Source: Macrostomum lignano (taxonomy: Eukaryota). Taken from it: a stretch of 64,000 nucleotides of DNA. A program made the position numbers and the translations under genes. The stretch covers positions 620,001 to 684,000 of the forward strand of contig NIVC01000227.1 of the NCBI GenBank assembly GCA_002269645.1. The letters run 5' to 3'. Within the stretch, counting starts at the first letter, position 1. Every line of letters starts with the position of its first letter. The notes under the pieces are model-generated. The model was not told the DNA's origin and ran no database searches. It was given only the letters and a program-made list of their open reading frames with translations. Positions 1 through 60,112 of the stretch are shown here, piece by piece.

Positions 1-903
1 CAGCGACTCGGTTTCAGCATTCTCTGTGATGACATCATCAGTTTCAGAATCCGATGTATGCAAAATGTCCATGGTTGTAGCTGATTTACTTTTCAATAAA
101 ATGATGCACTACTCGTATTAAGGAGGTGCAGTGCTTTCTCTTTCAAAAAGGCCTGTTTGCAGATTTTAAAGTGAACTGTAGAGTCTATAGCTACATATCG
201 AGTGTACACACTGCATAATCTATTTAGAGAGCATTAAGTGAAATGCACTTTGAAACTGTTTTTCGACCTTAGATTTGCCCAAGCCAAGTATAAAATGCTC
301 CCTTCTCGGCTAGAAAGGCTTTGCACAGGGGCGCATTAAGATTCTAGCTATAGTCTATGGCCAGCCCAACTGACCATGTCGGCAGGGAGGCTTTTCATAT
401 TACCAATTCCAGAATCAGAATCGGTTCGGATGTTCTTAGAAAAACAGCATGCAGTATATAACTATTCAATTGTTGAATGTTTGACTGCCTTAACAACCTC
501 ACTTAGCACAATTTTTCACTTTCTTCTTGGCGATTGTCATTCAATAATAAAAACTTTATAGCACGTATCTCCCTCTAGGTATGGAGACAAAAAGTTATAC
601 TTCACAAATTGGTTCTGGTTCTGGAACCAGAACAGGCAATATGAAAGGCCCAGGAACGGAGCTTTTGTATTTCTAGCTCCGGCGTGCAAAGGTTAAAATG
701 CTAATTCACCTCAATTTTATAGTTACCAACTGCAAAAAGTTGTAAAGTTTGAGCAAGACCGCAATCGCATTAAACTAAAACTTGCTGGATTACATAGCGT
801 GTATGTGTCTAAATACCGATTGAGAAAGGTTTAAATACACTAGAAAGTACAAAAAATCACAGACGATCAAAATTCACGAAAAATTGATAGATATTAGACT
901 CAC

Positions 904-3900
904 TTTTCACCGGGGGTCACTAGATCTTCCAACATAACAACGGAGCCATGTCTGCAGATGCCGGAAAACAGACCGAATACGTCGTACAGCCGATGCTGAG
1001 ATGCTGAGAGCAAGCTTTCGCCCCGACCAGCCCTCCAATTAGCGCAGGAGTCGTCCGCCGCTGTGACATTGGACTCGATATCGGGGGTGATAAAGTACCC
1101 AGCTTCTGCTTGAACTGAGTGGCCCGAATTCGCCGTCACTTTGTGCTTCATGCCGAAGCACGCGTCCAAGAGCAGAAAGAGTGGCTTTGAGGACACGCCA
1201 CCCTGTAGTACAAAGAGGAACGAAGAGATACAACGTATGCATTTATTATTTTTTTTTATTAAAGGCAGGGGGTTGTGTGCACCCAGGCGCACTTTAAGCG
1301 TCATTGGCACATAACCGGCGAGAGGCATTACTGCCCATTCCGCCGACTCCCCTGAGCAGGCAGACAAGCGCGCGGATACGTACGCAGGCACACACTCACA
1401 CAGGAGTGTACAGCGGCCCTAACTTTATTTTATCGTTAGGCATGTACACTTCACTGCGCCTTGGGATGTTGGCTCTCAAGGCCGTTAATTGCACGAGCAG
1501 AGCCAAGCCGAGATTCCAATTCAGCCCCAAATTAATGGCTGCACTTGGAATCGAGCCTGGGTCGCTGGCACACCAGAGCAGCTGCGCTACCGCTGGGCTA
1601 CGGCCCCCTAACGTATGCATATAAGGTTGCAAAAAGTTGCAAAGCAACCAAAAAACAGAATGATAAGTATAAATGCTAATTAACAGTAGAAACCCCAAAG
1701 AGGGGGAACGCACTTCTGACGATTTTTTTGCTGCGCCCGAACGGAGCAACTCAGGCGCACGAAATTCAAGAACAAGGTTTAACTTTTTGTTGCGCACTTT
1801 ATGAAAAATAAATCAAGTCACCACCCTTTCGGGCTGTCGAGATAATCAACGATTTTTCCAGGTAGGATTTTCCCATTCGTGCTAATGTATTCAGAACACC
1901 CCACACTCGAGTCAACCCTGTCTCAGCGCTGCCTTGCTGAGCCTTCATACGTCATCAGTGTCTTGAAAACATGTGCCTGCATCGCCTCTAGAAGCAGCGA
2001 CCAGTGGTCGTCACTTGGACGGAACTTCTGGACCTTCAGCGGATGCCACCAGGCGACAGGCGTCTATGACGACTCTGATGCAGAAAAGCCCAATATCACT
2101 GATCAAGCGTTCACAATGGGCAACTGTCGACTGCAGGAGGACCTTAACTTGACTCTGTAGCCTTTCACCCCCATCATGACGGCGTGTTCTTGAATTTCGT
2201 GCGCCTGCGTTGCTCCGTTCGGGTGCAGCAAAAATAATCGTCAAGGGGGAGGGGTTCCCCCAACCCGCTTGGGGCAAAAACGGCGGAAAAAGGCTAAAAA
2301 ATACTCACAACAAAGCAAGCAGGACAGTTCGGCAATTCAGGCCACCGCGCAACGGAAAGCACTCGACGAAATGCAGCAAAAGCACCGAATGAGTTGAGAG
2401 CCCGGTACATTTCCGCCTACACAATAGACACAAAAATAGGAAAAAATCTAATGAAAAAGTGCTTTAACTGTGGCAAAGGACGTTTAATTTTAGAATCTTG
2501 GCTAGCCAGTCCGTAAACTATACAATTGTATCCTGAAAACAACTATACTTGTTAGAGGAACCTACGAGCATGTCGGGGCTCAATGCTACTATTAACAAGT
2601 CGGACAGACTCTTACGATTGGACTTTGGATTGAACGCAGGGAAGCTCTATTTTTTAGAGTTGTATCTTTTGGAACACAAATTAAATAGAATAATTTTCAC
2701 AACAAAAACTAAATACGTGCATCAGCACTGGAAGTATGTGAAAACATGAATTATGTGTAAGTATGGGAAAGAATAAAACGATACTTTCAAACGCACGCAT
2801 AAAGTGATGTTTTGTTTTCAAAGTTTTGTAGTCATTGTTTTCTTCTCCTAGTTGGTGCATCTAAACTTTACAATGACTATCCTATGCTAAAAAGAAGCAG
2901 CCAGCTGCCTATTGTACGAAAACTGCCAGTTTAGGGAGCAGTTTAACTACGTTTTATTTAGAATATATTAATATTGAAAGTATTGATGCCTAAGAATAAT
3001 AAAAATACTTACACCTCGGGGTTCCCAAAGCGAATTTCGGAAATCTCTCAGGGCATTGCATGCGCTCCACAATGATGCCCCACATTGAAGCTGAACTGCA
3101 TCCAGCAGAAGGAGAGCGCGAATGTGAACAGCACGGCGTATGGACTGCTCTCCTCCGGGCTGGAGAGGCCAGAACCCGTTTCGAAGAAGAGTACCGCGAA
3201 CGTCGCAGCTGCATACCGAAGCTTCCACTAGCTGGCCTGCATATGAGTATTTTAAGAACAAGGATTAACGTTAAATGAATGTAAACGGATAATGAAAATG
3301 TTTGAAAGAACATTTAATTTTTCACAGTCAAAGTGCTGATAATACGGATATATGAACAATATACTGCTTATCTATGCGTGTATGCTATTCAACTATAGTT
3401 TTGCACCGCCTACACAAGTATCATATTAAAGCATCAGTAATAGTAACATAAGATTAAAAAGTCAAATTACGTACCATCAAACAGGAAAAGGGTTACAGGA
3501 ACAGTGTTAGAATCCATTTCACAGTTACACTTCAGAATCGCTGATGTCGCTTGTGTCTCATAGAAGCTTCCCTAAAAAAGACGATAGTAAAAAGGAAGGC
3601 GCTAAAAACTTACATTCTATATCGCACCTATCACAATAGTTTAATCCTATCACAATAGTTCAATCCTATCACAATAGTTCAATCCTATCACAATAGTTCA
3701 ATCCTATCACAATAGTTCAATCCTATCACAATAGTTCAATCCTATCACAATAGTTCAATCCTATCACAATAGTTCAATCCTATCACAATAGTTCAATCCT
3801 ATCACAATAGTTCAATCCTATCACAATAGTTCAATCCTATCACAATAGTTCAATCCTATCACAATAGTTCAATCCTATCACAATAGTTCAATCCTATCAC

Positions 3901-6900
3901 AATAGTTCAATCCTATCACAATAGTTCAATCCTATCACAATAGTTCAATCCTATCACAATAGTTCAATCCTATCACAATAGTTCAATCCTATCACAATAG
4001 TTCAATCCTATCACAATAGTTCAATCCTATCACAATAGTTCAATCCTATCACAATAGTTCAATCCTATCACAATAGTTCAATCCTATCACAATAGTTCAA
4101 TCCTATCACAATAGTTCAATCCTATCACAATAGTTCAATCCTATCACAATAGTTCAATCCTATCACAATAGTTCAATCCTATCACAATAGTTCAATCCTA
4201 TCACAATAGTTCAATCCTATCACAATAGTTCAATCCTATCACAATAGTTCAATCCTATCACAATAGTTCAATCCTATCACAATAGTTCAATCCTATCACA
4301 ATAGTTCAATCCTATCACAATAGTTCAATCCTATCACAATAGTTCAATCCTATCACAATAGTTCAATCCTATCACAATAGTTCAATCCTATCACAATAGT
4401 TCAATCCTATCACAATAGTTCAATCCTATCACAATAGTTCAATCCTATCACAATAGTTCAATCCTATCACAATAGTTCAATCCTATCACAATAGTTCAAT
4501 CCTATCACAATAGATCAATCCTATCACAATAGTTCAATCCTATCACAATAGTTCAATCCTATCACAATAGTTCAATCCTATCACAATAGATCAATCCTAT
4601 CACAATAGTTTAATCCTACCACAATAGATCAATCCTATCACAATAGTTCAATCCTATCACAATAGTTCAATCCTATCACAATAGTTCAATCCTATCACAA
4701 TAGTTCAATCCTATCACAATAGATCAATCCTATCACAATAGTTTAATCCTACCACAATAGATCAATACTTCTTACATTCCAACGCTGCACCAAATGAGGT
4801 GGAGAGTGTCGGTGCTGGTGCTGCAGGCACGGAAGGCAGACGGTCATTAAGTCACATTGCAAGCATCGGTAGCTATTTTCGCTGGTGTTGCCATGGCATA
4901 GTATGCATTTAACCGTTGGAGAAAAATGGTGACCAAATCCTGTTACGAATTCTGCAAAATGGTGATCCCATAGCTCTGCGGAATCATGCACCCGTTGATG
5001 ATGCGCAGAATAGACGAACTCAGCGTCAGGCTCCGGAAGTTCAGACGATTGCGTTTCCGGCCCTTAAACGAGGAGAATCAGAAACAGGGAAAGGTAAGCA
5101 TGCTTGACTTGACATGGTATTGCTTTGCACCAGATGGTGATGGGTATGACACAGGAAAGTTAAAAAATGACGATGAGATGAATTCTAAATTGGATGTAGC
5201 AATTAGATTGATATTATTTTAAGAGTTCAAAAAGGTTTTAAAAATTAAAAAGAAAGCTTTACTCTATCGAATTATAAAAAATCACAATAACATTTCTCTC
5301 ACAGGAGAGCTCTCTTTTTATGATACTACTTCTAGTATCTAAAGTATATGTTCCAGAAAATTATTATAGATAATGAGAGCATTCGGCTTTATTAACAGTC
5401 TATCTAATTAGTAAATTAAAAAGGACTAATTTCCGAGACTTTAAAGAGCAACTATTTTTATAATATAAGTCACCTATTCTACTCCAACCCCGGTCCACCA
5501 TTTTACCTACTTGGGAACACTGGTTTTACAAAAGACTATTATGAATTTGGAACAGTAACCAGAAGCAGTTGAAATTTTAGCTATTCGCATTCAAATCAGC
5601 CTCTGTGCAAAAAGCTGTGCAGTGCGGGACTTTTGCTTGCGGAGTTTTGCTTGCCGAAGTCTGCTGGCGGAGTTTTGCTTGCCGAAATCTGCTTGCCGAA
5701 GTCTGCTAGCGGAGTTTTGCTTGCCGAAGTCTGCTGGCGGAGTTTTGCTTGCCGAAGTCTGCTGGCGGAGTTTTGCTTGCCGAAGTCTGCTAGCGGAGTT
5801 TTGCTTGCCGAAGTCTGCTGGCGGAGTTTTGCTTGCCGAAGTCTGCTTGCCGAAGTCTGCTGGCGGAGTTTTGCTTGCCGAAGTCTGCTTGCCGAAGTCT
5901 GCTAGCGGAGTTTTGCTTGCCGAAGTCTGCTGGCGGAGTTTTGCTTGCCGAAGTCTGCTGGCGGAGTTTTGCTTGCCGAAGTCTGCTAGCGGAGTTTTGC
6001 TTGCCGAAGTCTGCTGGCGGAGTTTTGCTTGCCGAAGTCTGCTTGCCGAAGTCTGCTAGCGGAGTTTTGCTTGCCGAAGTCTGCTGGCGGAGTTTTGCTT
6101 GCCGAAGTCTGCTGGCGGAGTTTTGCTTGCCGAAGTCTGCTAGCGGAGTTTTGCTTGCCGAAGTCTGCTGGCGGAGTTTTGCTTGCCGAAGTCTGCTTGC
6201 CGAAGTCTGCTAGCGGAGTTTTGCTTGCCGAAGTCTGCTGGCGGAGTTTTGCTTGCCGAAGTCTGCTGGCGGAGTTTTGCTTGCCGAAGTCTGCTAGCGG
6301 AGTTTTGCTTGCCGAAGTCTGCTTGCCGAAGTTTTGCTTGCCGAAGTCTGCTTGCCGAACTTTGCTTGCCGAGCTTTGCTTGCAGGAAATTTGCTTGCTG
6401 CACATAAATTTGCCGAAGTTTGCTTGCAGAAATTTTGCTTGGCGAGGTTCGCCAGCCACAGTTTTCTTGCGGAACCTTAAAGAACCTATTAGTGAGCTTT
6501 TGTATTTCTATTTTTTATTTTCTAAGATTCGTGGAAGTCGCCTATAGTGTTATGATTTTGCATGAGGATATGGCGGATTTGAAAAGCCCTAGATGTTGAA
6601 ACTGGGAATACTGTTTCAACATCAGTACAGAATACAGAATAGATTTTTTGAAAACGAACGTACATTGTACATCAATGTACATCATTTCTATATACTAAAT
6701 ACTTAGAATGAAACTCTATAAGCCTAGTTTGAAAGCTTACTGTCAAGTCAGTTTACGTTGAATAAGAATCCACTTGCAAAGCATCTGTAGTAAGTAATAA
6801 TTGACTGACCAACTTCGCAAGTAATCAAAACAAGCAAGCAGACAAGCAAAATTCAAGTTCGGCAAGCAAAATTCCGCAAGCAAAGCTCGGCAAGCAAAAT

Positions 6901-8429
6901 TCCGCAAGCAAAGCTCCGCAAGCAAAGTTCGGCAAGCATAGCTCGGCAAGCAAAGTTCGGCAAGCATAGCTCCGCAAGCAAAGTTCGGCAAGCATAGCTC
7001 GGCAAGCAAAGTTCAGCAAGCAAAGCTCGGCAAGCAAAATTCCGCAAGCAAAGCTCCGCAAGCAAAGTTCGGCAAGCAAAGCTCGGCAAGCAAAGTTCAG
7101 CAAGCAAAGCTCGGCAAGCAAAATTCCGCAAGCAAAGCTCCGCAAGCAAAGTTCGGCAAGCAAAGCTCGGCAAGCAAAGTTCGGCAAGCATAGCTCGGCA
7201 AGCAAAGTTCGGCAAGCAAAGCTCGGCAAGCAAAGCTCGGCAAGCAAAATTCCGCAAGCAAAGCTCCGCAAGCAAAGTTCGGCAAGCAAAGCTCGGCAAG
7301 CAAAGTTCGGCAAGCATAGCTCGGCAAGCAAAGTTCGGCAAGCAAAGCTCCGCAAGCAAAGTTCGGCAAGCAAAGCTCGGCAAGCAAAGTTCGGTAAGCA
7401 TAGCTCGGCAAGCAAAGTTCAGCAAGCAAAGCTCGGCAAGCAAAATTCCGCAAGCAAAGCTCCGCAAGCAAAGTTCGGCAAGCAAAGCTCGGCAAGCAAA
7501 GTTCGGCAAGCATAGCTCGGCAAGCAAAGTTCAGCAAGCAAAGCTCGGCAAGCAAAGTTCGGCAAGCATAGCTCGGCAAGCAAAGCTCGGCAAGCAAAAT
7601 TCCGCAAGCAAAGCTCCGCAAGCAAAGTTCGGCAAGCAAAGCTCGGCAAGCAAAGTTCGGCAAGCATAGCTCGGCAAGCAAAGTTCAGCAAGCAAAGCTC
7701 GGCAAGCAAAGTTCGGCAAGCATAGTTCGGCAAGCAAAGTTCGGCAAGCAAAGCTCGGCAAGCAAAGTTCGGCAAGCATAGCTCGGCAAGCAAAGTTCGG
7801 CAAGCAAAGCTCGGCAAGCAAAGTTCGGCAAGCATAGCTCGGCAAGCAAAGTTCGGCAAGCAAAGCTCGGCAAGCAAAATTCCGCAAGCAAAGCTCCGCA
7901 AGCAAACTTCCTGCAAGCAAACGTCGTACTCCCTCCCGCATAGAGCATGGTGTGAGCCTTATATTGCCCGCTATTCCAAGCAGTTAGTTAACTTGCGGGC
8001 TTTATTTTTCAACCATTTGTCTATGCTTGCTCTATATGAGATAAAGCACGCTATTTTCCGGGCACTATTTACTTAGTGCCCTCGAGCTTTCGAGCTTTTC
8101 AAGACTAAAATTGTCCAGTGAACATTCATGAAAAGTGACCATTATACAGGAGGGTGACAAAATTCTATATTTGGTGTAGAATTTGCCTTGATTTGCAAAC
8201 AGTAGCACAACAGATGACTAAAAATATCACACCAATAAAAAATTTGTTACAGAGCACATCCTAAATGCAGCAAAAATCACTTACGGCTACTACATGATTC
8301 CGGATTTGAGGCACACACTCCCTTAGCAGGATGGCGCAACTGGCTGACAATTAATTGTTTTATAGCTTTCTGGCCAGGGCAACTGTATATTCTGGGCTTT
8401 CTTCTGCGATCTTCTTTTCGTCGTCCCAT
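904..8429 (-). CDS. Spliced CxC2/CxC3-KDZ (Zisupton/Kyakuja/Dileera-type) transposase-like gene, 3' part unresolved
   Basis: Hand-spliced exons 8429-8285, 5062-4776, 3571-3475, 3236-3013, 2416-2309 and 1202-904 have GT-AG introns with matching phases (1,0,1,0,0) and no stops over 386 codons. Motifs: CxxC..YRCxxC..CxxC..H..PxHxVQRWNG (CxC2-like), CxC..CSC..LLRNGFWP, CPAC, LLDACF, GLFSGICRHG..D..GEK (KDZ core). The exon after the phase-2 donor at 903 was not found. Confidence 0.85.
1243..1609 (-). mobile_element. tRNA-derived SINE in KDZ gene intron
   Basis: Minus strand starts GGGGCCGTAGCCCAGCGGTAG (A box), then GGCTCGATTCC (B-box-like), and ends in an A-rich tail. An 11-bp TSD (aacgtatgcat) lies at 1232-1242 and 1610-1620. 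Confidence 0.85.
1717..2243. mobile_element. Element bounded by ~58-bp inverted repeats (MITE-like)
   Basis: 1717-1774 is a near-perfect reverse complement of 2185-2243. The interior has no convincing ORF. Confidence 0.6.
3627..4765. repeat. 19-bp minisatellite (caatcctatcacaatagtt)n, ~60 copies, intronic
   Basis: Directly visible, highly homogeneous tandem array with variants only near the ends. Confidence 0.98.
5622..7940. mobile_element. Foldback-like element: two oppositely oriented arrays of a 14/28-bp subrepeat around a ~390-bp spacer
   Basis: The left array (ttttgcttgccgaagtctgctggcggag)n at ~5630-6440 and the right array (gcaagcaaagttcg/ctcg)n at ~6830-7920 are reverse-complement relatives. 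A related array starts at 63841. Confidence 0.7.
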
Positions 8430-8753
8430 CTGGAATACAACTGGAGAACAGGAGAATATTAATTTTTATCTTTAGTCTGGATTCAAACTGGCACTAGTCA
8501 AAAAGTGAAATCTATAAAAATATACCAATAAGCAGTACGATAAAAAATTGGTTATTAACAAACATTAAATAGCTATATATATATGTGTGTGGTGGAGTTC
8601 CCATTTTTCATAACACTTAATAAAATGCTTAAAATTGAAAATATGAGCTCTGAAATTGAATACATTAAAATATAGTTAAATTCTTAGAGATTTAGTATAT
8701 TTGGATTTATTTTAGCAGTCAGATATACTCTAGTAGGAATACATAGCCACATA

Positions 8754-9551
8754 CTTCGGGTGTGTCATAAGTAATGTCACTGCAGGCCTCTGTCTAAAAT
8801 ATGTAGGCACATGGACTTGTGGGTAGTGTTGCTGCAAAGTATACTTAGTGAAGCAATACCAGTGCATTTGAGACGTGCATAGGAGCACACTGTGCTCCAC
8901 CTGGATGGCAAGGGCAGCAAGGCAGACAATCGCTGCTGGCTAGGAGCTGGGGACTGCTGCCGACCGTGACCACGAGGTCCATCTCGGACAAGAAGACCAT
9001 GCTGCTGGTAGCCTTCACGCCAAACAAAGGAGTCTCATCAAGGGTCAACCGACTCAACCGTCAAGTTCGATGGTCAGTAGTTTTATCGGCTTTTGCCTGG
9101 CACACTGGGGACCTCTAGCGCACTCTCCGGTCAAATCCATGTCACCTGGATGAGGTTCTGTGGCAGATAAACACCGCACGGCCGCACACCTGTAAGGCTG
9201 TTTCGCATTTTCTGCCTGCACGGCGAGTGAATCTGCTCTGACAGTCCCTACAGCCCGGACTTAAACTTGTGCGACAGATTTCTGTTCATCAAATGGCTAA
9301 AGGCAGACTTTTCCAAGAGAGTTTCACAAGCCATGAAGAGGTCAAACAGGCCGCGTTGCACTGGTTATGGCAGTTGGAGGAAAAACACCTGCAGGCTGAG
9401 CTGTAGGTGTAGGTAGACAAGCTGTATAGCACTGCCAGAGGGTGATTGATATTGGGGGACTCTATGTTATTGGGTGGTACAGTTTTGTTCATCTGGGATT
9501 GCATGTTCCTCTGTTTTCACATCAGTGACATAACTTATGACACACCCGAAG
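8754..9551 (+). mobile_element. Non-autonomous mariner (Tc1/mariner) deletion derivative
   Basis: ~29-bp TIRs (cttcgggtgtgtcataagtaatgtcactg and its reverse complement, 1 mismatch) with TA duplications at 8752-53 and 9552-53. Degenerate transposase remnants: KKTMLLV, NTARPHT, PYSPDL..CD.FLF, F.S.EEVKQAALHWL. Confidence 0.88.
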
Positions 9552-12500
9552 TATAAGCTAATTGCTCTTCCAGGGATGGCTGAAACAAGAATAGAAGCAT
9601 CTTTCTTTGCTTGGGATGTGATGTGACCAAGTTAGATCACTGCCACCACTAATCCCAAGAAGCCTCACCCCTAGTAGAATGTTGAAAACCAGCAGACACA
9701 CACTTTAGAATAGTCTAACTATTTTATTGCACTTTAGAATTATAAGTGATGAGTATATGGGCCCCCTTCCATAGAGGTTGGGGTCCTGATTGTAGCCTGT
9801 CTTTGGCTGCCCATATGTATTTTATTTATTTGCTAGAGCAGCAGCTAGCAAAAAAGGGTGTGCACACAAAAAGGGTGTGCACACAGTGCTTTAGAAAAAA
9901 ATTCAAAAGTGCACCAGTTGCCATCTGTGGTTTTACAACTTTTTCCTATAGGGAGCCTCACAACATGAGAACTATGGAGTTTAGACATGCAACAAGAGGT
10001 GAGCTGAAAAGGCACTGGAACACATCAGTGAGTTAAGCTCTTTTGGTAAGTATTTAAGGATTGAATAGCTAAATTGGAGATCCTTAGATAACTCATTATA
10101 TATGGAGACTGAGCTGAGAGGGTGGTGAAGGTTGGAAAGGTCAATGGTCATGTAGTGAGTGTATTAGTGTTCTTGCCACCCTGGTGTAAGGCAGAAGACT
10201 AAGATTTGTGTCTATGCATTTGAATTGCAGGAACTCTATAATTATACTAGCCTAGTATATGAAAAACTAAGCTTGTGTTAGTTTTAGTTGATGAATTTTT
10301 AGAGCCTTTTTCAGAAATTTACTAAATGTTAAATAATGTTTTTTCTTCCTTTTCATTATTGTATCAAAGCCATAGGCACAATTTTAGTTCCAATGCTTCT
10401 TTGGTCATTTTTAATGCATTAAATCATTTATAATTCTAAAATAGGTTTATTATATATAAAAATACCAATAGCTAAAATGGCTATTAGCCACTTTTTATTT
10501 AGTATTTAAAAATAGGATAAGGCTAGTAGACCAGAATAGTTTCCTAAAGTTTATTGGTATAGCTAATCAGTTCCCATAAAGTATCAATACCATATATATT
10601 ACAGCTAGATATAAATATTTTAATATTACTATAATTTTAATATAATGTGAGTAAATCCCATTCTAATTACTGATATTTTGTCTTTTGTCTGATTTCCAAT
10701 CTTAACCAAACTTTTAAAAATAAAAGTTAGTGTATATATTTTGTTAGATAAATGGCAAATTTAACCACCAGATTTATGGTATTTTATTATATTTATATAT
10801 GCCCTTTGCCATTTAAGTTGGTCTTAGGACAAGATTTTTAGTCTTGGCACAAAGTTTCTATGCTAAGGACATTTGTGCTATTTTTGGTAAAATTGGTAAA
10901 ATATAAAAAATTTAATTAATTTAAATAAGATTTTTAAAAATCACACATGGAATTATATATTTTATGGGTCTAATTTATTATACAAATCCTGATTTGTATT
11001 AGGACATAGGACATTGTACATAGGCATTTTAGTAAATAGCATCCAGCATAGATCAGCCTAGTGGTGGCATAGTATACTATAATGATATAGTGCAACTATT
11101 AAGAGTGTAGTTCTGAGGCTTTCACTAATTAGATGACTACATATTTAACTATGTTAAGAAAGTCATAGTTAGTCACACTATTTTCTTATTTTTAAACCCA
11201 TAAATGAGTATTTTTTGTTTCTTACTATTGCACAATTAGGATAAATATCTAGTATCTAATGCATTTAAGGCAAAGCAATATACTTCAATTAGGATACAAA
11301 TTTAGGAATATTATAGAATAAAATAAAAAACATGATAAAAAACTAAAAAGTGCTATAATATATATTGTATATATATATCATATATATATTTGCTAATATC
11401 ATGAAATTGCATGATATTTGGCAAAAAGGAAAATGTACTATCTTTAACAAAAAGCAAATCAAGTATAAACAAGCTACCTAGTTTTTTCTAAGGTAATACA
11501 CTATAAAGATATAACAAAATAGAGAAAAAATAAAAAAAGAAACAAAGCAATAAAACAATGTTCTATAAAATAGATTTTACAACTGAAAAAGTAGCAATGA
11601 AAGGCTTCATATTTATGAATGACTTTGAGTGCTTAATTATATTTTTATATCTAATACACTATTTTCTACTATAATATATAATCAAACTTGGATTTTCCTA
11701 GGTATTATAAAAGCCTATCATATTAACTAAGCCTATAAATGTTAACTAATAACCAAGACCAAGATTATGGTTTGATAAAAAGCCTTGAAAGCTTATGCTA
11801 TTTTAGTTTTTTGTAATTAAGAATATATTTATGAATATATATATTTATTAGAATACCTTTTTGCTTCTTATTTGGTTTTTACTGCGTCCAATTTGGTATG
11901 TTGCAAATAGTTTAGCAGAAGTCATAGTTTACCATAGACTAAGAACTGAAGTAAACGAGCAATTTGATTTTTTTTACAACCAATTTGGTTTATTTCACAT
12001 CACGTATGCATTCACTATCCTCTCTCTGTCCACTAGATAGATTTTAGTATATGGTCTTCTTTGTGCCATTCTTTGCTTTAGTTATGCCTTCTAGCTATGG
12101 CCCAAATTGCTTGCAGTTAAAACCAAATTGATTTCTGTTGTCTATGGCTTTCTATAGTTTGTCTATGGCTAAATACTATTGCATAGCTATCCTAGCAAAA
12201 AAACCTAACAATAAATAGCTTAGATAATCATATCTATATACTATATTATACTATATGCAAGATATTATCCTAATACTATGTAGAAAAAATTGAGTAAATT
12301 CCTATGGCTATGCTATATAATATGTTTTAAAAAATTAGATAAAAAAGGACTAATTTAGGCCTATAAATTAATAATTCTAAAAAAAACTTTGCCAAATATT
12401 TAGTATTTTACTGCTTTAAGTTTAAATTAACAATTTCTTCCAATCTCATAGATAGGTTGAAAGTAAAAAAGTTTACATTTAGCAAAGTAAGTAAAATAAT

Positions 12501-13674
12501 CTTTAGTTTAAGTTTAAATGACTATTAAATTTTAGTAACCAGGTTTATCGACAAAGATTAGGCCTAATAAATAATATCTTCTAGGCCCCTATGGTACCCC
12601 TAGCTTTAGGGGCGGCAGAGCCTAATATTTGGGGGGGGGGCACCACTAGGCACAGGGCAAGGGGGGCATAGGTACCTTTTAATTGTTTATTAGGGCCTGA
12701 AATCAGAAAAAGCACTAAAAGTTGTTGCGTGAACTCATTTTCTGGGGGGGGGGCATGTGCCCCCAGTGCCACAAGCTCCCGCCAGCTGCCACCCATGCCT
12801 AGCTTAATAATCTGGGCCCAATGCTATAGGCCCTATATTGTTATTATTTGTGAAGAATAGAGCATGGGGTCTATTTATATAGCCTGGCTATGTAATAGAA
12901 CCAGAGGTACTGTTGCCACCACTGCCAGCCACACCTCATCATAGTTCACATTCACACAAACAGTCATAGAATGTGATAGGAGTGATAATAGACAAAAAAT
13001 TGCATGCATTTGAATTGAAGTCAACTTCCAGATATTCTAAAAAACACTCTCTGCCTAGACTGTAGATTGTAGTTCTACCATAATTACTAACGCATTAGTT
13101 ATTAAATTCCAGTCACTTCATATGACACAAAAGGCAATAAGTATACTAGTGTAAGAATTCGTAACACCTTACCAAATTTAGGCCTATGCATAAAAACAAA
13201 TGTTCTAAATTTCATTCGGCTCCAACTGCTATGAAAATAAACCGCCAACCTTGATTTGCGCAAAATGTAGCCTGTAGGCTTACTCTTTAAAAAGGTTTAA
13301 GCATTATTCTCATGACTTTAAAATGAATACAAATGGACATCTTACTAATACATTTTCGTACACAAAACATGTATTGACCGCTTCTGAAGCCGAAAAAAAC
13401 GTGTCCTATTCTGCTACGTGATTGTGACACTGATGCAACCACACTCAGCACTTATATGGTATAGTGATTTCAGTGAATGAAATAAATAAACCCCACTGAT
13501 CAATGTTTCAATGTACAATGTATGAGCGTACATAAAATATTAGAACCCCATTCTAACATACAAGTACAAATTGTCAGCACAAAAATTGTTATTGCTAAGA
13601 TTCTAAGATTTTCTAAGAAACGAGGTTTCCCGTCCTTCCACTTAAGTAGTTCTTGGTCTAATACCCTGTCGCCC

Positions 13675-16529: not shown

Positions 16530-17632
16530 GCAAAGAAAGCAGCAAAAAAGCAGCCCCCATCGGCGGGTGTCAAGCAGCCTCGCCTTGCCCCAGATTTTGC
16601 TCACTTCGATTTGTCATCTCGAAGAAAACAGTCTGGCAAAAAATCTACTGCCAAAAAAGCGACTACTGATGGCGATGATGCGCCGTTGGATGCTGAGCTG
16701 AACCAACTGCTGCAGGCGCCACTGGCATCTGTTCGAGTGGATGTGCTCAAATCTCAATGCCTAATGTTAGAGGGCAAAGAGAAACGAAAGGTGAAGCATT
16801 TCTGATCTAGCTGTGGTCTGAATCTGCTGTTCTGCAATATCTTTAGTCAGCCATAGCCAAGATTTTCAGTCTTTCATTAGCCATTCATTAGTGAGGTTTG
16901 AGTTTTCTATTAGCCACTCATTAGTGAGGTTTGATTGAGTTTTCTATTGGCCATTCATTAGTGAGGTTTGAGTTTTCTATTAGCCACTCATTAGTGAGGT
17001 TGAGTTTTCTATTAGCCACTCATTAGTGAGGTTTGAGTTTTCTATTAGCCACTCATTAGTGAGGTTTGAGTTTTCTATTAGCCATTCATTAGTGAGGTTT
17101 GAGTTTTCTATTAGCTATTCATTAGTGAGGTTGAGTTTTCTATTAGCCACTCATTAGTGAGAAACGTAGCTTTCTATTAGTCCTTTATTAGTGAGATTTT
17201 CAGCCTTTTATTAATAATTTATTAGAAAGAGATTAGCTAGTGTAATAATGATGGAACACCCAGTCATGTAACTAATTTCTCACAATATTTTTATAATCTC
17301 AGGTTCGCGCTCGCCTCCTGGTTGCTATGGGCGCCCGCGTCGCCAAGAAGCGGCCAGTCGGCTACGCCCGGCTGCAAGTGGATCGGGCCGAAGCGAAAGT
17401 TCGCGAACGAGCCGACAAAATCGCCGAGCGAGCCAGGCTGCGCATAACAGGCTCCGGCGGTGCGGGCAGGAAGGCTGCCAGAAATAAGAAGGCCCAATCA
17501 TCGGCTGCCAACAATAGCGGCAAGGTTGAGAAGATTCGCCACGTTAACTCGAAAGCGGCGTCAAAGTTCAACAATAAATTTGCGGGAAACAAAAGAAGGC
17601 TTGATAATAGACGGGCTGGTAAAAAGCGGTGA
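16530..17632 (+). CDS. Probable FSAF1/C1orf131 (DUF4602)-like small-subunit processome factor; last two exons, first exon not identified
   Basis: Exons 16530-16790 and 17303-17632 join in phase 0 through AG/GT sites. The junction region LASVRVDV..EKRKVRARLLVAMGARVAKKRPVGYARLQ aligns without gaps to my recollection of the C1orf131 motif (RLEV..R..LGAKPPK..VNY.LQ). The C-terminus is Lys/Arg-rich. Confidence 0.6.
16851..17190. repeat. ~33-bp intronic minisatellite (gccactcattagtgaggtttgagttttctatta)n
   Basis: About 9-10 copies, directly visible. Confidence 0.93.
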
Positions 17633-17892: not shown

Positions 17893-19249
17893 TTAGAATT
17901 TGAACGTGCACCCATCGAAGAGGCAGTTGGCAAACATCGGCTGTTGCACACTTCGCAGGTCAACTTGAGCTTGCTGCATGACTGTTGCACTAGTGGTTGC
18001 ACTCGTAGTCGCATCGGTTGGTGGGGCCAAATTGTCACTAACAGCGGTAGCAACCTTCCTGAGGGTTCTGTCACGCTTGCGTGCGAGATAACGTCGAACA
18101 GTGGACTCCGATCGTTGTCCTGTTACCGCCATTATCTCCCCCATAGGCATTCCTTTGTCGAAAAGATCCGCAATACGCGTGACGCGTATGCAGTGATTCG
18201 TGTACTGCTTGGAGAGGTTGCACACACTACTAACGTGCTTCATGAATGCAGCCAACCAATTGACACCGCGCACTTGCGTAGCAGAGAATCGAATTTGTCC
18301 TCCCGAATTGTTAGTCAGAGGGCGCGGAAAGAACGAGGACGAATTCTGCGGTAACAAACTCTGATAATGCAGGATCAACTCCCGCTGAGCGCCGTAGATC
18401 CGACTCTGTTTGCGCTGATTTCCCTTGCATTTTGTTGGATCGCTAGTCTGGTTTTTTGTCTTTAACGGCGGCAACGCAAGATATGGATTCCCATCAGCGT
18501 CGACTTCTTCTTGGAGCGTGCCAACTTGCTTTAGACTTGAAAGGTGCTCTTGACATCTCTTGCCCAGGACATACAGCAGCGTAAATAGTACTTCATCTTG
18601 CAACCGTTCTGCTGTAGAACGGTCAAAATAAGCACGCATTTTCTGTAAATCACCTTCTTCTATTGGCTCGTGCTGATTGACAGTGCCTCCATCAGCATGA
18701 AAATGCCGCACCTTTACTCGCAGCATCCGGTTGGCAGTGGCGAACTCGTCACTGGAAATACGGCGTAATATTTGTTCGACGCTTCAGCACGAGAGTCAAG
18801 TACCTCTGCACTCCAGCACGAATGCAGACCAACGTAGCTGGCGAATAGCAACTGCCGTCAGATTTTTTTAGACAGAAGTAAAAGAACCTTAAAAATTCGG
18901 CCAAGCGACTGTCACTGATCACGCTTACATCCACAGCACCATGCTTCTTCAAAAACTCCACGAACATTTTGCCATACAGAAACATGTGTTCTCGTGTAGT
19001 GCTCGGCAGTGATTCCAGTTCGGCAACATCCATCGCACTGGGTAAATCAGATAGTTCTGGAAGCTCGACACTAGAAACCGCAGCGGCCTCATCAGCCGTC
19101 TCGATTTTAGTCAGGTAGTCGATAAAATCTCCAAGAATTTCATCGGAACTGTGGTTCACGGCGCTCAGTTCACTCAGAAAATCTAGTTCAGTAGACGAGA
19201 CGCCATCTAAACTGTCGACCGGTAGGTTTTTCCAGTTGATAAGAGGCAT
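17893..19249 (-). pseudogene. Crypton-like tyrosine recombinase (DUF3504-type), frameshifted
   Basis: Two ORFs (19249-18749 and 18726-17893) join through a 1-nt frameshift near 18760, restoring NI..DEFATANRML. Motifs: L..FLRFFY..LKK.DG..YSPATL..IRAGVQRYL, LGKR, YTNHCIRVT, TGQRSESTVRRY. Confidence 0.85.
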
Positions 19250-22544: not shown

Positions 22545-25150
22545 AGACGTAGTAGTAGTAGTCGACGTAGCGGTACGTGACTTACTTGACTTAGCTGCAG
22601 GGCTGTCCTGGGGGGGGGGCACAGCGGGAATGCGCGAACGTCCATTCCGCTAATCCCTGAACGGCCGACGCGTCGCTATAGACAAAGGGTTGGCGCCCCC
22701 CAGGGAGGTCCCCCAGTGTCGCCAGCAGCTATAGTGCTCTCTGGAAAGGAGAGTTCGGCCCTGCGGGTGGCCCGGAGGTAGCGCATGAGCTGATGAAAGT
22801 TTTCGGGTTTGCACACTTCAGTAATAGATGTGTGTGGCCCGAGGTAAGTGAGTCTGGCGGAAATGCTCAGCGGTTTCGTCACCTGAGTTACAGAAACTGC
22901 AGATGGCGTTGGTGGTGTTGCCCTGCAGGTACTGGTGCCTAGAGAAGCAGCTGTGACCTAGGAGGGTCATGGTGGCAGCCCGGATGTCTCTGCGCGAGAG
23001 GCGCAAGAGGAGCTTCCGGAGCAGGTGAGAGGGCTGAGGGACAGCACCTTTGGATTGCCTGCATGTAGTGCAGTTCGCCCAGGTCGAGCGGTGCTGGGTC
23101 CTGATCCACGCTTTGATGCGCGAGTCAATGACACAGCCAGGAATCGGGACAAGAGGTTCGGGACCGAGAGAGGAGCCGGAGGCGCCAACTTTGCAAGGGC
23201 GTCAGCCAACTCATTTCCTCGGATCCCCACATGCCCCGGAACCCACTTAAGGGTGATTTTGTTGGTGGAACCCAACATGTTGAGGAGTTTGATACAGTTG
23301 AGGACTGTAGCAGAATTGGTACTACAGCCACTGATGGCGTGCAAGGCAGCTTGGCTGTCCGAATGGAAAATGATGTTCTTACCGGTTACGCCAGTGGCGA
23401 GAAGCTCTGCCGTGCAGGAGCTGATGGCGAGAACTTCATTTTGGAAGACACTGAAGTTGACCCCAGTGTACTGAGCGTGGGTTGCGATGACCCTCTCGTT
23501 CAGGAAGATTCCAACACCAAAACCGGTGTTGGCTGACTGCTTAGAACCGTCGGTGTAGCAATGAAACTCACCAGGTTTCAAGTGGTCATTGATGGTATCG
23601 CGCGAGTCTATAGCTACGGAGTAGCGTTGTTTCAGGTTGAGCGTTGTTGAGGCAATGTCATCGGTGAAGACGCAATTGGCCTGACACTCGTTGAGAATGT
23701 TGAGGCACAGGTCGCTATGCGGGACGAGGTTCCGCTTAGCAGTTGCCCTCATGTAAATGAATTTGACACCGGCATCAAGTAAGCGCCGCATCGTTCTAGC
23801 CGCCTCACCCCTGACGAAGAGGTCGAGAGGCGGTAGATTAAGGAAGGCCCCATGCCGGCAAAGGGCGTGGACCTGGTGGCGTTGCAGATAAGCCTACACG
23901 CTCTGCCCTGGATCGTGTTGAGCAAATCTGCGTGGCTTTTGACCTGGGTAGCGCTAACCCAGACAACCGAGGCGTACGTAATGGCGGGTCTAACTACGGA
24001 AGTGTAGATCCACCAAAGCCGCTTTGGGGATAGACCCCAAGAAGTGCCAAGTGCTCGTCGGAGCTGGGCCAGGATGGCTGAGGCACGCTTGGCTTTTGCT
24101 TTCACGTGGAAGGACCAGTTGAGCCGGTGGTCAAGTATGACCCTAAGACATCTGGTCTGGTGCGCGAAGGCAATATCTCTGCCGTATAACTGCAGAGGTC
24201 GTATGTTCCAGCGTATTCTGCTGGTGAACATAATGGCAACAGTTTTGGGCTCAGAGAGTTCCAGACCGTTGTCATTGGCCCAGGATTCGGCTTTGCGGAT
24301 AAAGCTCTGCATCAGATCCCTGAGCGTGCTGGGAGACGGTCCTGCCACAATGGCAGTGACGTCGTCAGCATGCCCGACTTTGAAGACGGGATCAGGTCGT
24401 GAGTCGCCCAGGAGAGCGTCCATGACCAGGTTCCAGAGCGTCGGGGTGAGGACTCCGCCTTGGGGTCCACCCTTACAGACTCTGGTGGAGGCAGTTTGCC
24501 CAAGAAGTTGGGCAGTGACCGTACGGTTGGAGATCATGTACATGATCCACCGTATGAGGGTAGCGTGAGCTTTGCGGTTTTGAAGGGCCCTCTGAAACGC
24601 TTCAAAGATAACGTTGTCGAAGGCGCCAATAATGTCGAGAAAAAGAGCCAGGGCGTTACCGTCACCAAGTACTACCCGTTCAATCTTCTCGACAATCGCA
24701 TGCAGGGCGCTGTCAGTCGACCTGGTACGGAAGGCGTGCTGATTATTGCTTGAGGGGCATTGCTGTCAGCTCGCATGAAAGCAGCGACCAGAGCTTGCTG
24801 ACGTTAAGCTAATTGGCCTAAAGGCCTTGACGCTCTGGTAGTTCACCCTTCCCGGGTTTGGGAATGAAGACTACCCGAGCTTTGGTCCAGCACTTGGGAA
24901 CGTATCCCAGCTGGATAGAGGCCCGCATGAGATTGCGAGTCTCAAGAACGAGGGTATATTGGCTGCTTCACGAAGAAGAACAGGGTAGATACCATCAGGT
25001 CCAGGAGATTTGAAGGGCTTGAAGGTTCTGACCGCACGAGCGATTAAGTCTTCAGTGATAATGCCCGCCGCTAGGGTGGCTCCCCTGACCAGGCCAGCTG
25101 ACTCCCGCTCTGCTGCGACCCCCTGCTGTCTCGGTTCTGTCTCCCACTCA
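22545..25150 (-). mobile_element. 5'-truncated, decayed non-LTR retrotransposon with RT + RNase H (I-group, Loa/Tad1/R1-like)
   Basis: KPFKSPGPDGI, GGPQGGVLTPTLWNL, HADDV (degenerate YADD), RNase H YTDGSK..SDSQAAL..WVPGHVGIRGNELAD, C-terminal CSFC..ETAEH, and a (CTA)n-like tail near 22550. At least four frame changes. Confidence 0.92.
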
Positions 25151-34199: not shown

Positions 34200-35330
34200 T
34201 CATCCAGCAGCGGTGGTCCTAATATTGTACGCCGTCGTCACCGAGGTGGCCAGGTTGATGCCCGACGACTCCTTCGCTGACGCCTTTCGGCGCCTGCCGC
34301 ACAGGCCAGCGGTTGCCAGGCAGATGGCGCCCCCAATCGTCTGGCAGAAGGCCGTACGAAAGCTTCGTCCAATGAAGTAAGCAAACGGATCGAAAATGCT
34401 GTTCAAGAACATGAAGCCCTCCAAAACTTGATTGCCCAAGTCTAACTGGCTCTCGGTTAGTTGTTTGCTCGGCGACAAGTACCTGGCGCTGTAGCCTTCG
34501 TACACAGAGAAGGCCGCCCTGGGCGCGTGCGTCAGGAAGAACACGAGGTTCATGCCGATCATCGCGGCGCAGGCGCCGACCATTTTGTTGCGCTTCAGGT
34601 TGGCCGAGCCGCTGGTCAGGCGGCTCAACTTGCTGGCCTGAAGCCGAAGCGCAACGGCCACGATGATGCATCCGGATAGAAGAACAAAGAACAGTGCCAC
34701 CTTTGACACGTAGAACTCGATATTGTACTGCAGTGGGTCCAAGACGGCCAACAATGCTTCGTCAGTCCTGCTATCGCAGCGGTTGTCAATGTACTCTTGC
34801 TCGGCAGACCACAGGGCCGGGTCAATGCTGCCTAACAGAAACAGAATGATTAGCATGATGCAGTGGTTGCGTCCAGTCATGATTGTCTTCACTTTCAGCG
34901 GCATCACCACGGCTAGGACGCGTTCAACTGTAAGTCCAACGTGAAAGTACGGCGTTCCATTCAGTATGTACTTGTGGACATAGTTGACAATGTAACACGC
35001 GGCCGCGTTTTCGTTCATGAGCTTCAGAAACGGGGACAGTTTGTAGTTCATTGTGCGCATCAAGTAGATCTGGTAGCAGTTGAAGCCGCCGATTGCCAGC
35101 GAAAGCGCGTCGAAGCTGGTAATGATCAACATCGTGCGCCTCGATATTTTAGGGAAAGTCTTCGAGTTGAGTAGGATGGTGATGAAGCAGAGAACGTTGA
35201 CGACTATTCCGAAAACCATTAAAGTTGGCATCAGCCAAATGACGATGTTAGTGAAGGCCCAGCGCCAGCTGGGAATTTCAAACCAAGGCAGTTCTTCTTC
35301 TTCGGCTGTACTATTGCTGCTGTCGTACAT
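34200..35330 (-). CDS. Class A (rhodopsin-like) GPCR, peptide-receptor-like, intronless, 376 aa
   Basis: Seven hydrophobic segments, TM1 GIVVN, TM3 C..TVERVLAV, TM6 FFLTHAP, TM7 NSIFDPFAY (DPxxY variant), an N-terminal N-glycosylation sequon and a C-terminal Cys. Confidence 0.93.
   Translation of the reverse strand: MYDSSNSTAEEEELPWFEIPSWRWAFTNIVIWLMPTLMVFGIVVNVLCFITILLNSKTFPKISRRTMLIITSFDALSLAIGGFNCYQIYLMRTMNYKLSPFLKLMNENAAACYIVNYVHKYILNGTPYFHVGLTVERVLAVVMPLKVKTIMTGRNHCIMLIILFLLGSIDPALWSAEQEYIDNRCDSRTDEALLAVLDPLQYNIEFYVSKVALFFVLLSGCIIVAVALRLQASKLSRLTSGSANLKRNKMVGACAAMIGMNLVFFLTHAPRAAFSVYEGYSARYLSPSKQLTESQLDLGNQVLEGFMFLNSIFDPFAYFIGRSFRTAFCQTIGGAICLATAGLCGRRRKASAKESSGINLATSVTTAYNIRTTAAG

Positions 35331-55555: not shown

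Positions 55556-60112
<4,557 letters not shown>

Follow-up and report, generated by a model that had tools for sequence, protein, structure and literature searches.

A nine-exon KDZ transposase gene with repeat-filled introns in Macrostomum lignano, probably part of a resident transposon copy

Introduction

Does an intron-rich transposase gene that has stayed intact while repeats accumulated in its introns belong to a transposon, or has its host taken it over? The question is raised by BOX15_Mlig019149g2 of the flatworm Macrostomum lignano, the first six of whose nine exons lie in the window analyzed here (64,000 nucleotides of contig NIVC01000227.1, positions 620,001 to 684,000). KDZ (Kyakuja-Dileera-Zisupton) transposases (Pfam PF18758) were first defined in basidiomycete fungi, and KDZ/Zisupton elements are little-studied large DNA transposons whose experimentally observed movement is so far mostly fungal. 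A literature search for Zisupton in flatworms or Macrostomum ("KDZ" was not paired with those terms) returned no paper. An earlier note, made from the sequence of the window, had described a hidden, spliced KDZ gene of the Zisupton family and had held it to be more like a domesticated host gene than a mobile copy. The analysis below points instead, with a probability of roughly 0.6, to a resident KDZ transposon copy, autonomous or recently stranded.

Results

Gene structure and GenBank identity

Each border of the six minus-strand exons carries an AG acceptor or GT donor, and the cumulative phases are 1, 0, 1, 0, and 0, followed by 2 at the final donor. When spliced, these exons give 386 stop-free codons with the N-terminus MGRRKEDRRRKPR, and the coordinates and phases given in the earlier note were confirmed. 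The exons are as follows:

8285 to 8438, minus strand: exon 1, with the ATG at 8429-8427 and the basic N-terminus MGRRKEDRRRKPR
4776 to 5062, minus strand: exon 2, with a B-box/ZZ-like zinc finger, CxxC..CxxC..CxxC..H.H..PPH
3475 to 3571, minus strand: exon 3, with the first CxC motif (CNC)
3013 to 3236, minus strand: exon 4, with the second CxC motif (CSC), TLLRNGFWP, and SLWSACNAL
2309 to 2416, minus strand: exon 5, with YRALNSFG..AFRR...W....CPACF
904 to 1202, minus strand: exon 6, the first half of the KDZ catalytic domain, with LLLDACFG, CRHG, and TPGE(K); donor at 903

Two exons that had been proposed although absent from the open reading frame list (3571-3475 and 2416-2309) align with the paralog blocks GS.Y....CxC and Y/FR.LN..G...AFR.....W.....CPACF, and they do complete the CxC and CPAC motifs. 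The 386-amino-acid product is contained, without a mismatch and at offset 3, in the 745-amino-acid GenBank protein PAA87534.1/PAA90160.1 (P0002), which removes a chance origin of the six-exon model. The GenBank label "partial" is explained by an annotated coding sequence that begins 9 nucleotides upstream of the ATG, at 8438. Downstream catalytic exons had been predicted, and exons 7 to 9 were found 1.3 to 2.6 kb past window position 1 (19705-21009 of L002, the locus on this contig), where they encode the YDVAC, FHAYGH..C, and GEAVERFW motifs. The complete open reading frame of 2,238 nucleotides has no stop or frameshift, and every motif is conserved; UniProt model A0A1I8GQ87 represents the same gene with incorrect splicing.

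The gene was not hidden, as GenBank already holds this nine-exon coding sequence, in a gene annotation built from StringTie/TACO RNA-seq assemblies (PMC5730564); it is a new flatworm member of the known KDZ transposon superfamily. That the RNA-seq-guided GenBank model is the spliced product indicates expression of a spliced mRNA, a property shared by active transposases.

KDZ domain, catalytic core, and zinc-binding region

Membership in the KDZ family was judged against the Pfam gathering score of 26.6 bits. The 386 amino acids encoded in the window scored 33.5 bits over profile positions 3 to 98, and the full 745-amino-acid protein scored 140 bits over positions 3 to 217 of 217, so the assignment of a spliced KDZ transposase gene stands. 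Ten residues (D303, D416, E465, E468, C343, C373, H375, H439, H443, and C447; P0002 numbering, with the D303 codon at 1166-1164 in exon 6) are invariant in six flatworm sequences, and E389, D416, H443, C447, E465, E468, and W471 are the same in all 16 animal and fungal sequences compared. In the AlphaFold model the order of secondary-structure elements is compatible with an RNase H-like core, with pLDDT values of 85 to 94 in the core. A Foldseek search of the full model against the PDB gave nothing significant (the best transposase was ISCth4, E 0.69), and a PDB sequence search gave weak matches to B-box/ZZ fingers only.

The CxC2/CxC3 clusters named in the earlier note were borne out in part. 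The CxC1 and CxC2 Pfam models gave no match to the protein at E <= 0.1; such matches were weak in P0010 (a paralog described below) and P0005 and above the cut-off in P0159 of amphioxus. The region nevertheless aligns with the CxC domain of P0159, with the C.C motif and TLLR.G.WP kept, and amphioxus relatives have a CxC1/CxC2 region homologous to that encoded by exon 4. Within E <= 0.1, a Pfam scan of P0002 yielded just KDZ and a sub-threshold IS1595 zinc ribbon, with neither SWIM nor CxC4.

From this domain layout a mode of action can be proposed. The basic N-terminus MGRRKEDRRRKPR would direct nuclear entry, while the B-box/ZZ-like finger and the CxC cysteine cluster would bind zinc and recognize the transposon ends. 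D303 on strand 1, D416 after strand 4, and E465/E468 in the following helix may form an RNase H-like acidic core, which would cut and rejoin DNA and thereby generate a short target site duplication (TSD).

Intron repeats and flanking elements

The introns of BOX15_Mlig019149g2 total 8.6 kb, compared with 1.4 to 2.7 kb in its paralogs, and contain at least five nested repeats or arrays. The following elements were located in the introns and upstream of the gene:

3627 to 4766, no strand assigned: 19-bp satellite, 60 copies, in intron 2; the array in the second genomic copy (L001) exceeds it by 342 bp
5623 to 7921, no strand assigned: Foldback-like pair of inverted 28-bp tandem arrays, in intron 1
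1717 to 2243, no strand assigned: small element of ~530 bp in intron 5, with 59-bp inverted ends (1717-1774 and 2185-2243)
8752 to 9553, no strand assigned: Tc1/mariner-like nonautonomous element, flanked by TA and bounded by 31-bp terminal inverted repeats (TIRs), that lies 320 bp upstream of the ATG

Of the intron contents listed earlier, the satellite, the inverted-end element, and the Foldback-like arrays were upheld. By eye, the reported SINE, at about 1400-1620, has A and B boxes like those of a tRNA, yet neither ARAGORN nor Rfam called it.

Two candidate features upstream of the gene were rejected. The C-terminus of the old gene model P0001 matches 8876-9036, which at first suggested tandem KDZ copies or long terminal direct repeats; the matching sequence is an antisense open reading frame of the dispersed Tc1/mariner-like element, an element that also terminates several unrelated gene models, and Pfam did not recognize this degenerate mariner-like remnant. 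An SNORA77 candidate at 9135-9236 was weak, below threshold, and within the same repeat. On the other side of the gene, the region 3' of the stop codon has undergone heavy rearrangement and holds mariner-like insertions, a satellite with a 40-bp unit, and a 1.9-kb palindrome.

Paralogs and the ancestry of the introns

Three M. lignano paralogs, BOX15_Mlig024767g1 (P0003), Mlig032550g1 (P0151), and Mlig007768g1 (P0010), are 26 to 40% identical to BOX15_Mlig019149g2. Their domain order is the same, but they differ from it in their short introns and low identity. The flatworm sequences, including BOX15_Mlig019149g2 and P0003, form one clade with 100% bootstrap support, beside other animal and Agaricomycete KDZ proteins. 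No protein 40 to 99% identical to BOX15_Mlig019149g2 was present among 5.8 billion protein clusters, and searching a word-indexed protein collection with the alignment of the paralogs gave no further flatworm relatives.

Seven intron positions and phases are common to P0002, P0003, P0151, and amphioxus P0159, and six of them occur in P0010. As these introns are shared with diverged paralogs and with amphioxus, intron richness is a trait of the family. The multi-exon build of KDZ transposases is thus of ancient origin and should not be taken to indicate domestication. The eight introns were probably inherited from the family ancestor, with nested repeats later inflating them from about 1.4-2.7 kb to 8.6 kb.

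One paralog lies in a complete element. The P0003 element is 9,924 bp, with 259-bp TIRs (98.5% identical), no other long open reading frame, and a 6-bp TSD, CTCATT, this single insertion being the source of the 6-bp value for the flatworm clade. No inverted repeats were found within 10 kb of P0151 or P0010, which counts against the transposon reading.

These data bear on whether the host keeps the gene, its mobility lost, for a cellular function. The intact 745-amino-acid open reading frame amid so many nested repeats speaks for such domestication, as do correct splicing of its transcript and the suffix "g2," which by the naming convention of the annotation (PMC5730564) suggests a second gene cut from a longer transcriptional unit; Zisupton-derived genes have also been reported in vertebrates (PMC3424704). 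However, the intact frame is partly an ascertainment effect, since broken copies would escape notice, and the same intron richness is found in the TIR-bearing P0003 element. No ortholog 40 to 99% identical was recovered, and the intact catalytic residues discriminate neither way. The ratio dN/dS between paralogs was rejected as a measure, since at 26 to 50% identity they are saturated, and the two genomic copies, being identical, give no such signal either. Domestication is accordingly judged unlikely.

Duplicated block and candidate transposon ends

The gene lies within a block of at least 22 kb common to contigs NIVC01000227.1 (L002) and NIVC01000126.1 (L001). The two copies are collinear over about 23 kb, with unrelated left flanks that carry different genes. 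No substitutions separate them in exons or introns, and exon-versus-intron divergence is therefore uninformative as a test of selection. The left edge of the block is as follows:

13415 to 13435, minus strand: left edge of the shared block, reading CATCAGTGTCACAATC on the gene strand; candidate 5' transposon terminus

The block start (window position 13435) is identical at 13 of 16 positions, in register, to the outer TIR end of the P0003 element (CACCCGTGTCACACTC), and the core of this terminus, GTGTCACA, occurs once in the 31-kb locus. The break in collinearity and the terminus-like sequence coincide to the base, which argues against domestication and for a transposon copy.

Other observations count against the transposon reading. 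In the 10 kb that follow the stop codon, no right terminus or inverted repeat was recovered by blastn (word size 9), a fuzzy 13-mer of the terminus, the expected TSD, shared 11-mers, or Smith-Waterman alignment against shuffles, and the right edge of the shared block lies in the assembly gap at 28259-28802 of L001. Copy number appears to be low, as each paralog is on just one or two contigs and BOX15_Mlig019149g2 passed an annotation filter that discarded transcripts overlapping repeat annotation (PMC5730564). Both the missing right repeat and the low copy number would fit domestication. On that view the gene would be a host-retained transposase, immobile but expressed and kept intact while repeats filled its introns, which is improbable. 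A tblastx comparison of L002 with the P0003 element found the KDZ gene alone in common, with no TET/JBP partner, and there was no other conserved open reading frame within the 31-kb locus.

The missing right end also raises the possibility of a stranded relic, a KDZ copy that was formerly mobile, has lost its right end downstream, and is now transcribed under no selection. The DV1 line has duplicated chromosomes, so the two near-identical copies could be ordinary duplicates, one with a rearranged left flank, and the Mlig_3_7 assembly indeed holds 180 Mb of duplicated blocks (PMC5730564). The rearranged sequence 3' of the stop codon and the inflated introns agree with decay, and Cryptococcus KDZ-domain genes without inverted repeats or TSDs have been read as relics (bioRxiv 10.1101/2024.08.15.608186). 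Against a relic stand the conservation of all motifs in a frame free of stops and frameshifts and the break in collinearity precisely at a terminus-like sequence; moreover, Cryptococcus KDZx1 is mobile although no TIRs were detected (bioRxiv 10.1101/2024.08.15.608186). A relic is thus doubtful, and the resident transposon copy remains the preferred reading.

Discussion

By its sequence, BOX15_Mlig019149g2 falls in a branch of the KDZ superfamily, whose members are cut-and-paste DNA transposons, that is specific to flatworms. Together with its paralogs, the locus shows a distinct KDZ branch to be resident in a free-living flatworm. Nothing in the analysis shows domestication, and the claim made for it is not supported, given the ancestral intron richness, which has also been described for Zisupton transposons (PMC9297572), the P0003 element with its TIRs and TSD, and the TIR-like start of the shared block. 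Were domestication true, it would be a spiralian KDZ case in a regenerative flatworm, with a function testable by knock-down and transgenesis. For annotation, the gene should be labeled a KDZ transposase, and the 9.9-kb P0003 element, with its terminus CACCCGTGTCACA and 6-bp duplication, can serve as a masking template for the flatworm KDZ family.

The gene resembles the KDZ superfamily in its full-length KDZ domain, its upstream Cys-rich region, and the motifs D.xF, CRH, GE(K/R), YDxxCK, FHxxGHxxxCQ, and DGExxERxW. Unlike fungal KDZ genes, it has an animal host and no TET/JBP partner in the 31-kb locus, its protein does not reach the CxC Pfam models, and it carries an extra B-box/ZZ-like finger common only to other animal members. 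KDZ1 of Cryptococcus neoformans, which is experimentally mobile, is 10.9 kb with 236-bp inverted repeats (bioRxiv 10.1101/2024.08.15.608186), and the P0003 element (9.9 kb, 259-bp inverted repeats) is closely like it in layout. KDZ1 differs from the flatworm elements in its 8-bp TSDs, extra genes, and membership in the Dileera clade; compared with it, the copy in the window has a candidate left end and no right end that was found.

Assignment to the Zisupton family, as first proposed, is unproven. The Zisupton domain set is KDZ, CxC4, and SWIM (bioRxiv 10.1101/2024.08.15.608186), the latter two of which were not detected in the BOX15_Mlig019149g2 protein, and that protein has 745 amino acids, whereas Zisupton has about 1,400. 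The Zisupton TSD is 8 bp (PMC12730594), in contrast to the sole TSD observed in the flatworm clade, that of 6 bp at the single P0003 insertion. The likeness lies in gene architecture and nearest relatives: the Zisupton transposase gene has multiple exons and, in one description, "looks like a typical protein-coding gene" (PMC9297572), the combination of a multi-exon gene with a KDZ domain being shared with Zisupton of fish, the nematode Pristionchus, and other eukaryotes, and the nearest non-flatworm relatives of BOX15_Mlig019149g2 are in lancelets, echinoderms, and molluscs, as has been reported for Zisupton of Pristionchus.

Gene structure and annotation

All six exons proposed in the earlier note were present, bordered by AG before and GT after.

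Exons of the KDZ gene within the window
8429-8285, minus strand, exon 1
5062-4776, minus strand, exon 2
3571-3475, minus strand, exon 3
3236-3013, minus strand, exon 4
2416-2309, minus strand, exon 5
1202-904, minus strand, exon 6

Their summed lengths gave the phases 1,0,1,0,0, and the splice product comprised 386 stop-free codons with the N-terminus MGRRKEDRRRKPR. Past exon 6, nothing in window positions 1 to 900 carries the frame further. At its own locus, L002 (position 18439-x for window position x; 100% identity), the whole gene consists of nine GT-AG exons, with exons 7 to 9 located 1.27 to 2.57 kb past window position 1 and coding for SYDVACK, FHAYGHTAACQ, and DGEAVERFW, the catalytic motifs that had been predicted to lie there. 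An exhaustive profile search identified the corresponding 745-aa protein (P0002), inside which the 386 window-coded residues match exactly from offset 3; it is the Macrostomum lignano entry PAA87534.1/PAA90160.1 of GenBank, titled "hypothetical protein BOX15_Mlig019149g2, partial." The contig, NIVC01000227.1, belongs to assembly GCA_002269645.1, whose GenBank annotation was made from RNA-seq using StringTie/TACO and experimentally defined ends, with repeat-overlapping transcripts dropped (PMC5730564). The predicted splice junctions are therefore RNA supported, and a gene that had been described as hidden was already in GenBank.

An older UniProt model of the same locus, A0A1I8GQ87 (P0001, "DUF3677 domain-containing protein"), is mis-spliced, with exon 4 in the wrong frame, exons 1 to 3 and 5 absent, and the antisense ORF of a repeat as its 3' end. 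This repeat is a nonautonomous Tc1/mariner-like element, present at window 8752-9553 and at L002 21340-22312 and 26745-27715, with 31-bp inverted repeats (TACTTCGGGTGTGTCATAAGT.ATGTCACTG), TA flanks, and frameshifted DE.W, D..R.H, and YSPD remnants; it was not recognized by Pfam. Its antisense ORF (METRLFGVKATSSMVFLS...) ends several unrelated M. lignano UniProt models (P0001, P0008, P0009, and P0012).

Other features of the window
43497-44843 and 17893-19249, minus strand, ORFs with DUF3504, phage-integrase-like, and QRICH1-like domains, relatives of Crypton-type tyrosine recombinases
22967-24543, minus strand, retroelement reverse transcriptase and RNase H ORFs split into overlapping frames, by our reading of non-LTR type
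34200-35330, minus strand, intronless rhodopsin-type GPCR ORF, an ordinary host gene
55556-60112, minus strand, exons of a kinesin light chain-like TPR protein, an ordinary host gene
16530-17632, plus strand, FSAF1-domain gene, an ordinary host gene annotated in L002
21093-22141, 38485-39634, 39896-40466, 40891-41416, 50086-50727, and 57150-57695, long tandem arrays with several frames open on both strands, mimicking ORFs of 130 to 380 aa

Domains and predicted fold

The Pfam KDZ model (PF18758) matched residues 295 to 386 of the window product at 33.5 bits (cut-off, 26.6). As only the first 98 of its 217 positions were matched, the domain extends out of the window; full-length P0002 scored 140 bits over positions 3 to 217, bearing out the KDZ assignment of the earlier note. 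Relatives of P0002 bear KDZ/CxC labels in UniProt. Domain order was compared in an alignment of P0002 with five flatworm relatives and amphioxus, sea-urchin, and priapulid proteins; in P0002, a variable basic N-terminus is followed by a zinc-finger-like motif, a two-CxC region, CPACF, and the KDZ core. The conserved CxxC..CxxC..CxxC..H..H finger has weak B-box/ZZ similarity. Of the CxC clusters claimed previously, two CxC motifs, together with TLLRxGxWP, align with the CxC1/CxC2 Pfam domain of the amphioxus KDZ protein P0159, but with the Pfam CxC1 and CxC2 models this region stayed below reporting level (E 0.1). Residues D303, D416, E465, and E468 (P0002 numbering) are invariant among the flatworm sequences, and E389, D416, E465, and E468 are so across animals and fungi. 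Domain and motifs place P0002 within the KDZ superfamily; Mlig019149g2 is an additional member of a known group, of annotation value and modest general interest.

The AlphaFold model of P0002 (mean pLDDT, 68.9; core, 85 to 94) places D303 on strand 1, D416 just past strand 4, and E465/E468 at the opening of the helix after strand 5, the order expected of an RNase H-like transposase core. We infer this fold from topology and knowledge of the superfamily, since a Foldseek search of the model against the PDB gave no significant match (best transposase, ISCth4; E 0.69).

Intron ancestry and contents

Seven intron positions, with identical phases, are common to P0002 and the M. lignano paralogs BOX15_Mlig024767g1 (P0003) and Mlig032550g1 (P0151), and six of them occur in Mlig007768g1 (P0010). 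All seven positions and phases recur in the 16-exon amphioxus gene for P0159 (Branchiostoma belcheri KV411395.1; L007 6001-14053, compared against L002) at an identity of only ~25 to 30%. This animal KDZ clade therefore inherited its exon-intron build from its ancestor, and intact splice phases are thus uninformative on domestication; the intron-rich structure that had been taken as its sign is a family trait, found also in P0003 and P0159. Intron size is particular to the P0002 copy, totaling 8.6 kb versus 1.4 to 2.7 kb in the paralogs.

Intronic repeats
3627-4766, 19-bp satellite, 60 copies
5623-7921, two inverted arrays of 28-bp units
1717-2243, ~530-bp element with 59-bp inverted ends

These contents had been reported correctly, except that the putative SINE at ~1400-1620, with tRNA-like boxes by eye, was called by neither ARAGORN nor Rfam. 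An ORF kept intact while its introns gained repeats fits a domesticated host gene and likewise a stranded relic of a KDZ transposon, as do the low apparent copy number and the expression of the gene.

Transposon ends

P0003 is encoded within a 9,924-bp segment (L003 6646-16569; NIVC01000166.1) bounded by 259-bp, 98.5% identical terminal inverted repeats (TIRs), which have the termini CACCCGTGTCACA...TGTGACACGGGTG and hold internal repeats of GGGGAAACTACAT. The segment is flanked by the 6-bp direct repeat CTCATT and contains no other long ORFs. Judged from its sequence, it is a bona fide, structurally complete KDZ element. No inverted repeats were found within 10 kb of P0151 or P0010.

L002 is collinear over ~23 kb with a second genomic copy of the gene, L001 (NIVC01000126.1), with zero exon differences and one intron indel outside satellites. 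Collinearity breaks sharply at L002 5004 (window 13435; L001 5002), to the left of which the two loci share nothing and their annotated genes differ; nor did the L001 flank match any part of the window over the following 50 kb. The common block opens with CATCAGTGTCACAATC, identical in register at 13 of 16 positions to the outer end of the P0003 TIR (chance, ~3.5e-6, reckoned for one comparison), and its core, GTGTCACA, is unique within the 31-kb locus. The ATG is 5.0 kb downstream of this start (4.2 kb if a later mariner-like insertion is discounted); the distance in the P0003 element is 3.4 kb. The boundary check suggested earlier thus yielded a terminus-like left edge only, as five different searches of the 10 kb downstream of the stop codon failed to turn up a matching right end. 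This region is rearranged: it holds a perfect 1.9-kb palindrome and a 40-bp satellite as well as mariner-like insertions. The right edge of the block falls in a 544-N scaffold gap of L001, within a mariner-like copy. Duplicated chromosomes are known in the sequenced DV1 line (PMC5730564). The two inverted arms of the palindrome (L002 21643-23575 and 25482-27414) match perfectly over 1,933 bp and are separated by a 1.9-kb spacer. The palindrome begins 0.6 kb downstream of the gene, and L001 has a corresponding region; it may exist in the genome or have arisen during assembly.

The missing right end fits a stranded relic or a domesticated gene, of which we regard the former as unlikely and the latter as slightly more so. 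Mlig019149g2 is probably a transposon-borne transposase gene (probability, roughly 0.6), because one member of its lineage sits in a structurally complete transposon, the start of its own duplicated block resembles the end of that transposon, and the features that seemed typical of a host gene are shared across the family.

Relatives and comparison with known KDZ transposons

M. lignano has at least five KDZ lineages (P0002, P0003, P0151/P0004, P0006/7, and P0010), 26 to 50% identical to one another, which together with P0005 formed one clade in a neighbor-joining tree (bootstrap, 100%). P0005, a 748-aa KDZ protein from an intronless, presumably mRNA-derived contig (L004; Logan SRR30276804, 2,935 bp), clusters with P0003, to which it is 43% identical. 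Outside this clade, the closest relatives come from amphioxus, where there are many paralogs, and from sea urchins, a starfish, a priapulid, and bivalves; mushroom KDZ proteins come next. In the literature searched, Zisupton and Macrostomum or flatworms were mentioned together in a single paper, on Tc1/mariner.

The label "Zisupton family" went further than the sequences allow, and the assignment of P0002 to Zisupton proper is unproven: the sole target site duplication (TSD) observed in the flatworm clade, from one insertion, is 6 bp, versus 8 bp in Zisupton, and neither a SWIM nor a CxC4 domain was detected in P0002. Published TSD lengths for Kyakuja, Dileera, and Zisupton are 7 to 8 bp, again unlike the 6 bp of the P0003 element. 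In layout, the P0003 element (9,924 bp; 259-bp inverted repeats) closely resembles Cryptococcus KDZ1, a 10.9-kb element with 236-bp inverted repeats and an 8-bp duplication whose transposition has been observed (bioRxiv 10.1101/2024.08.15.608186).
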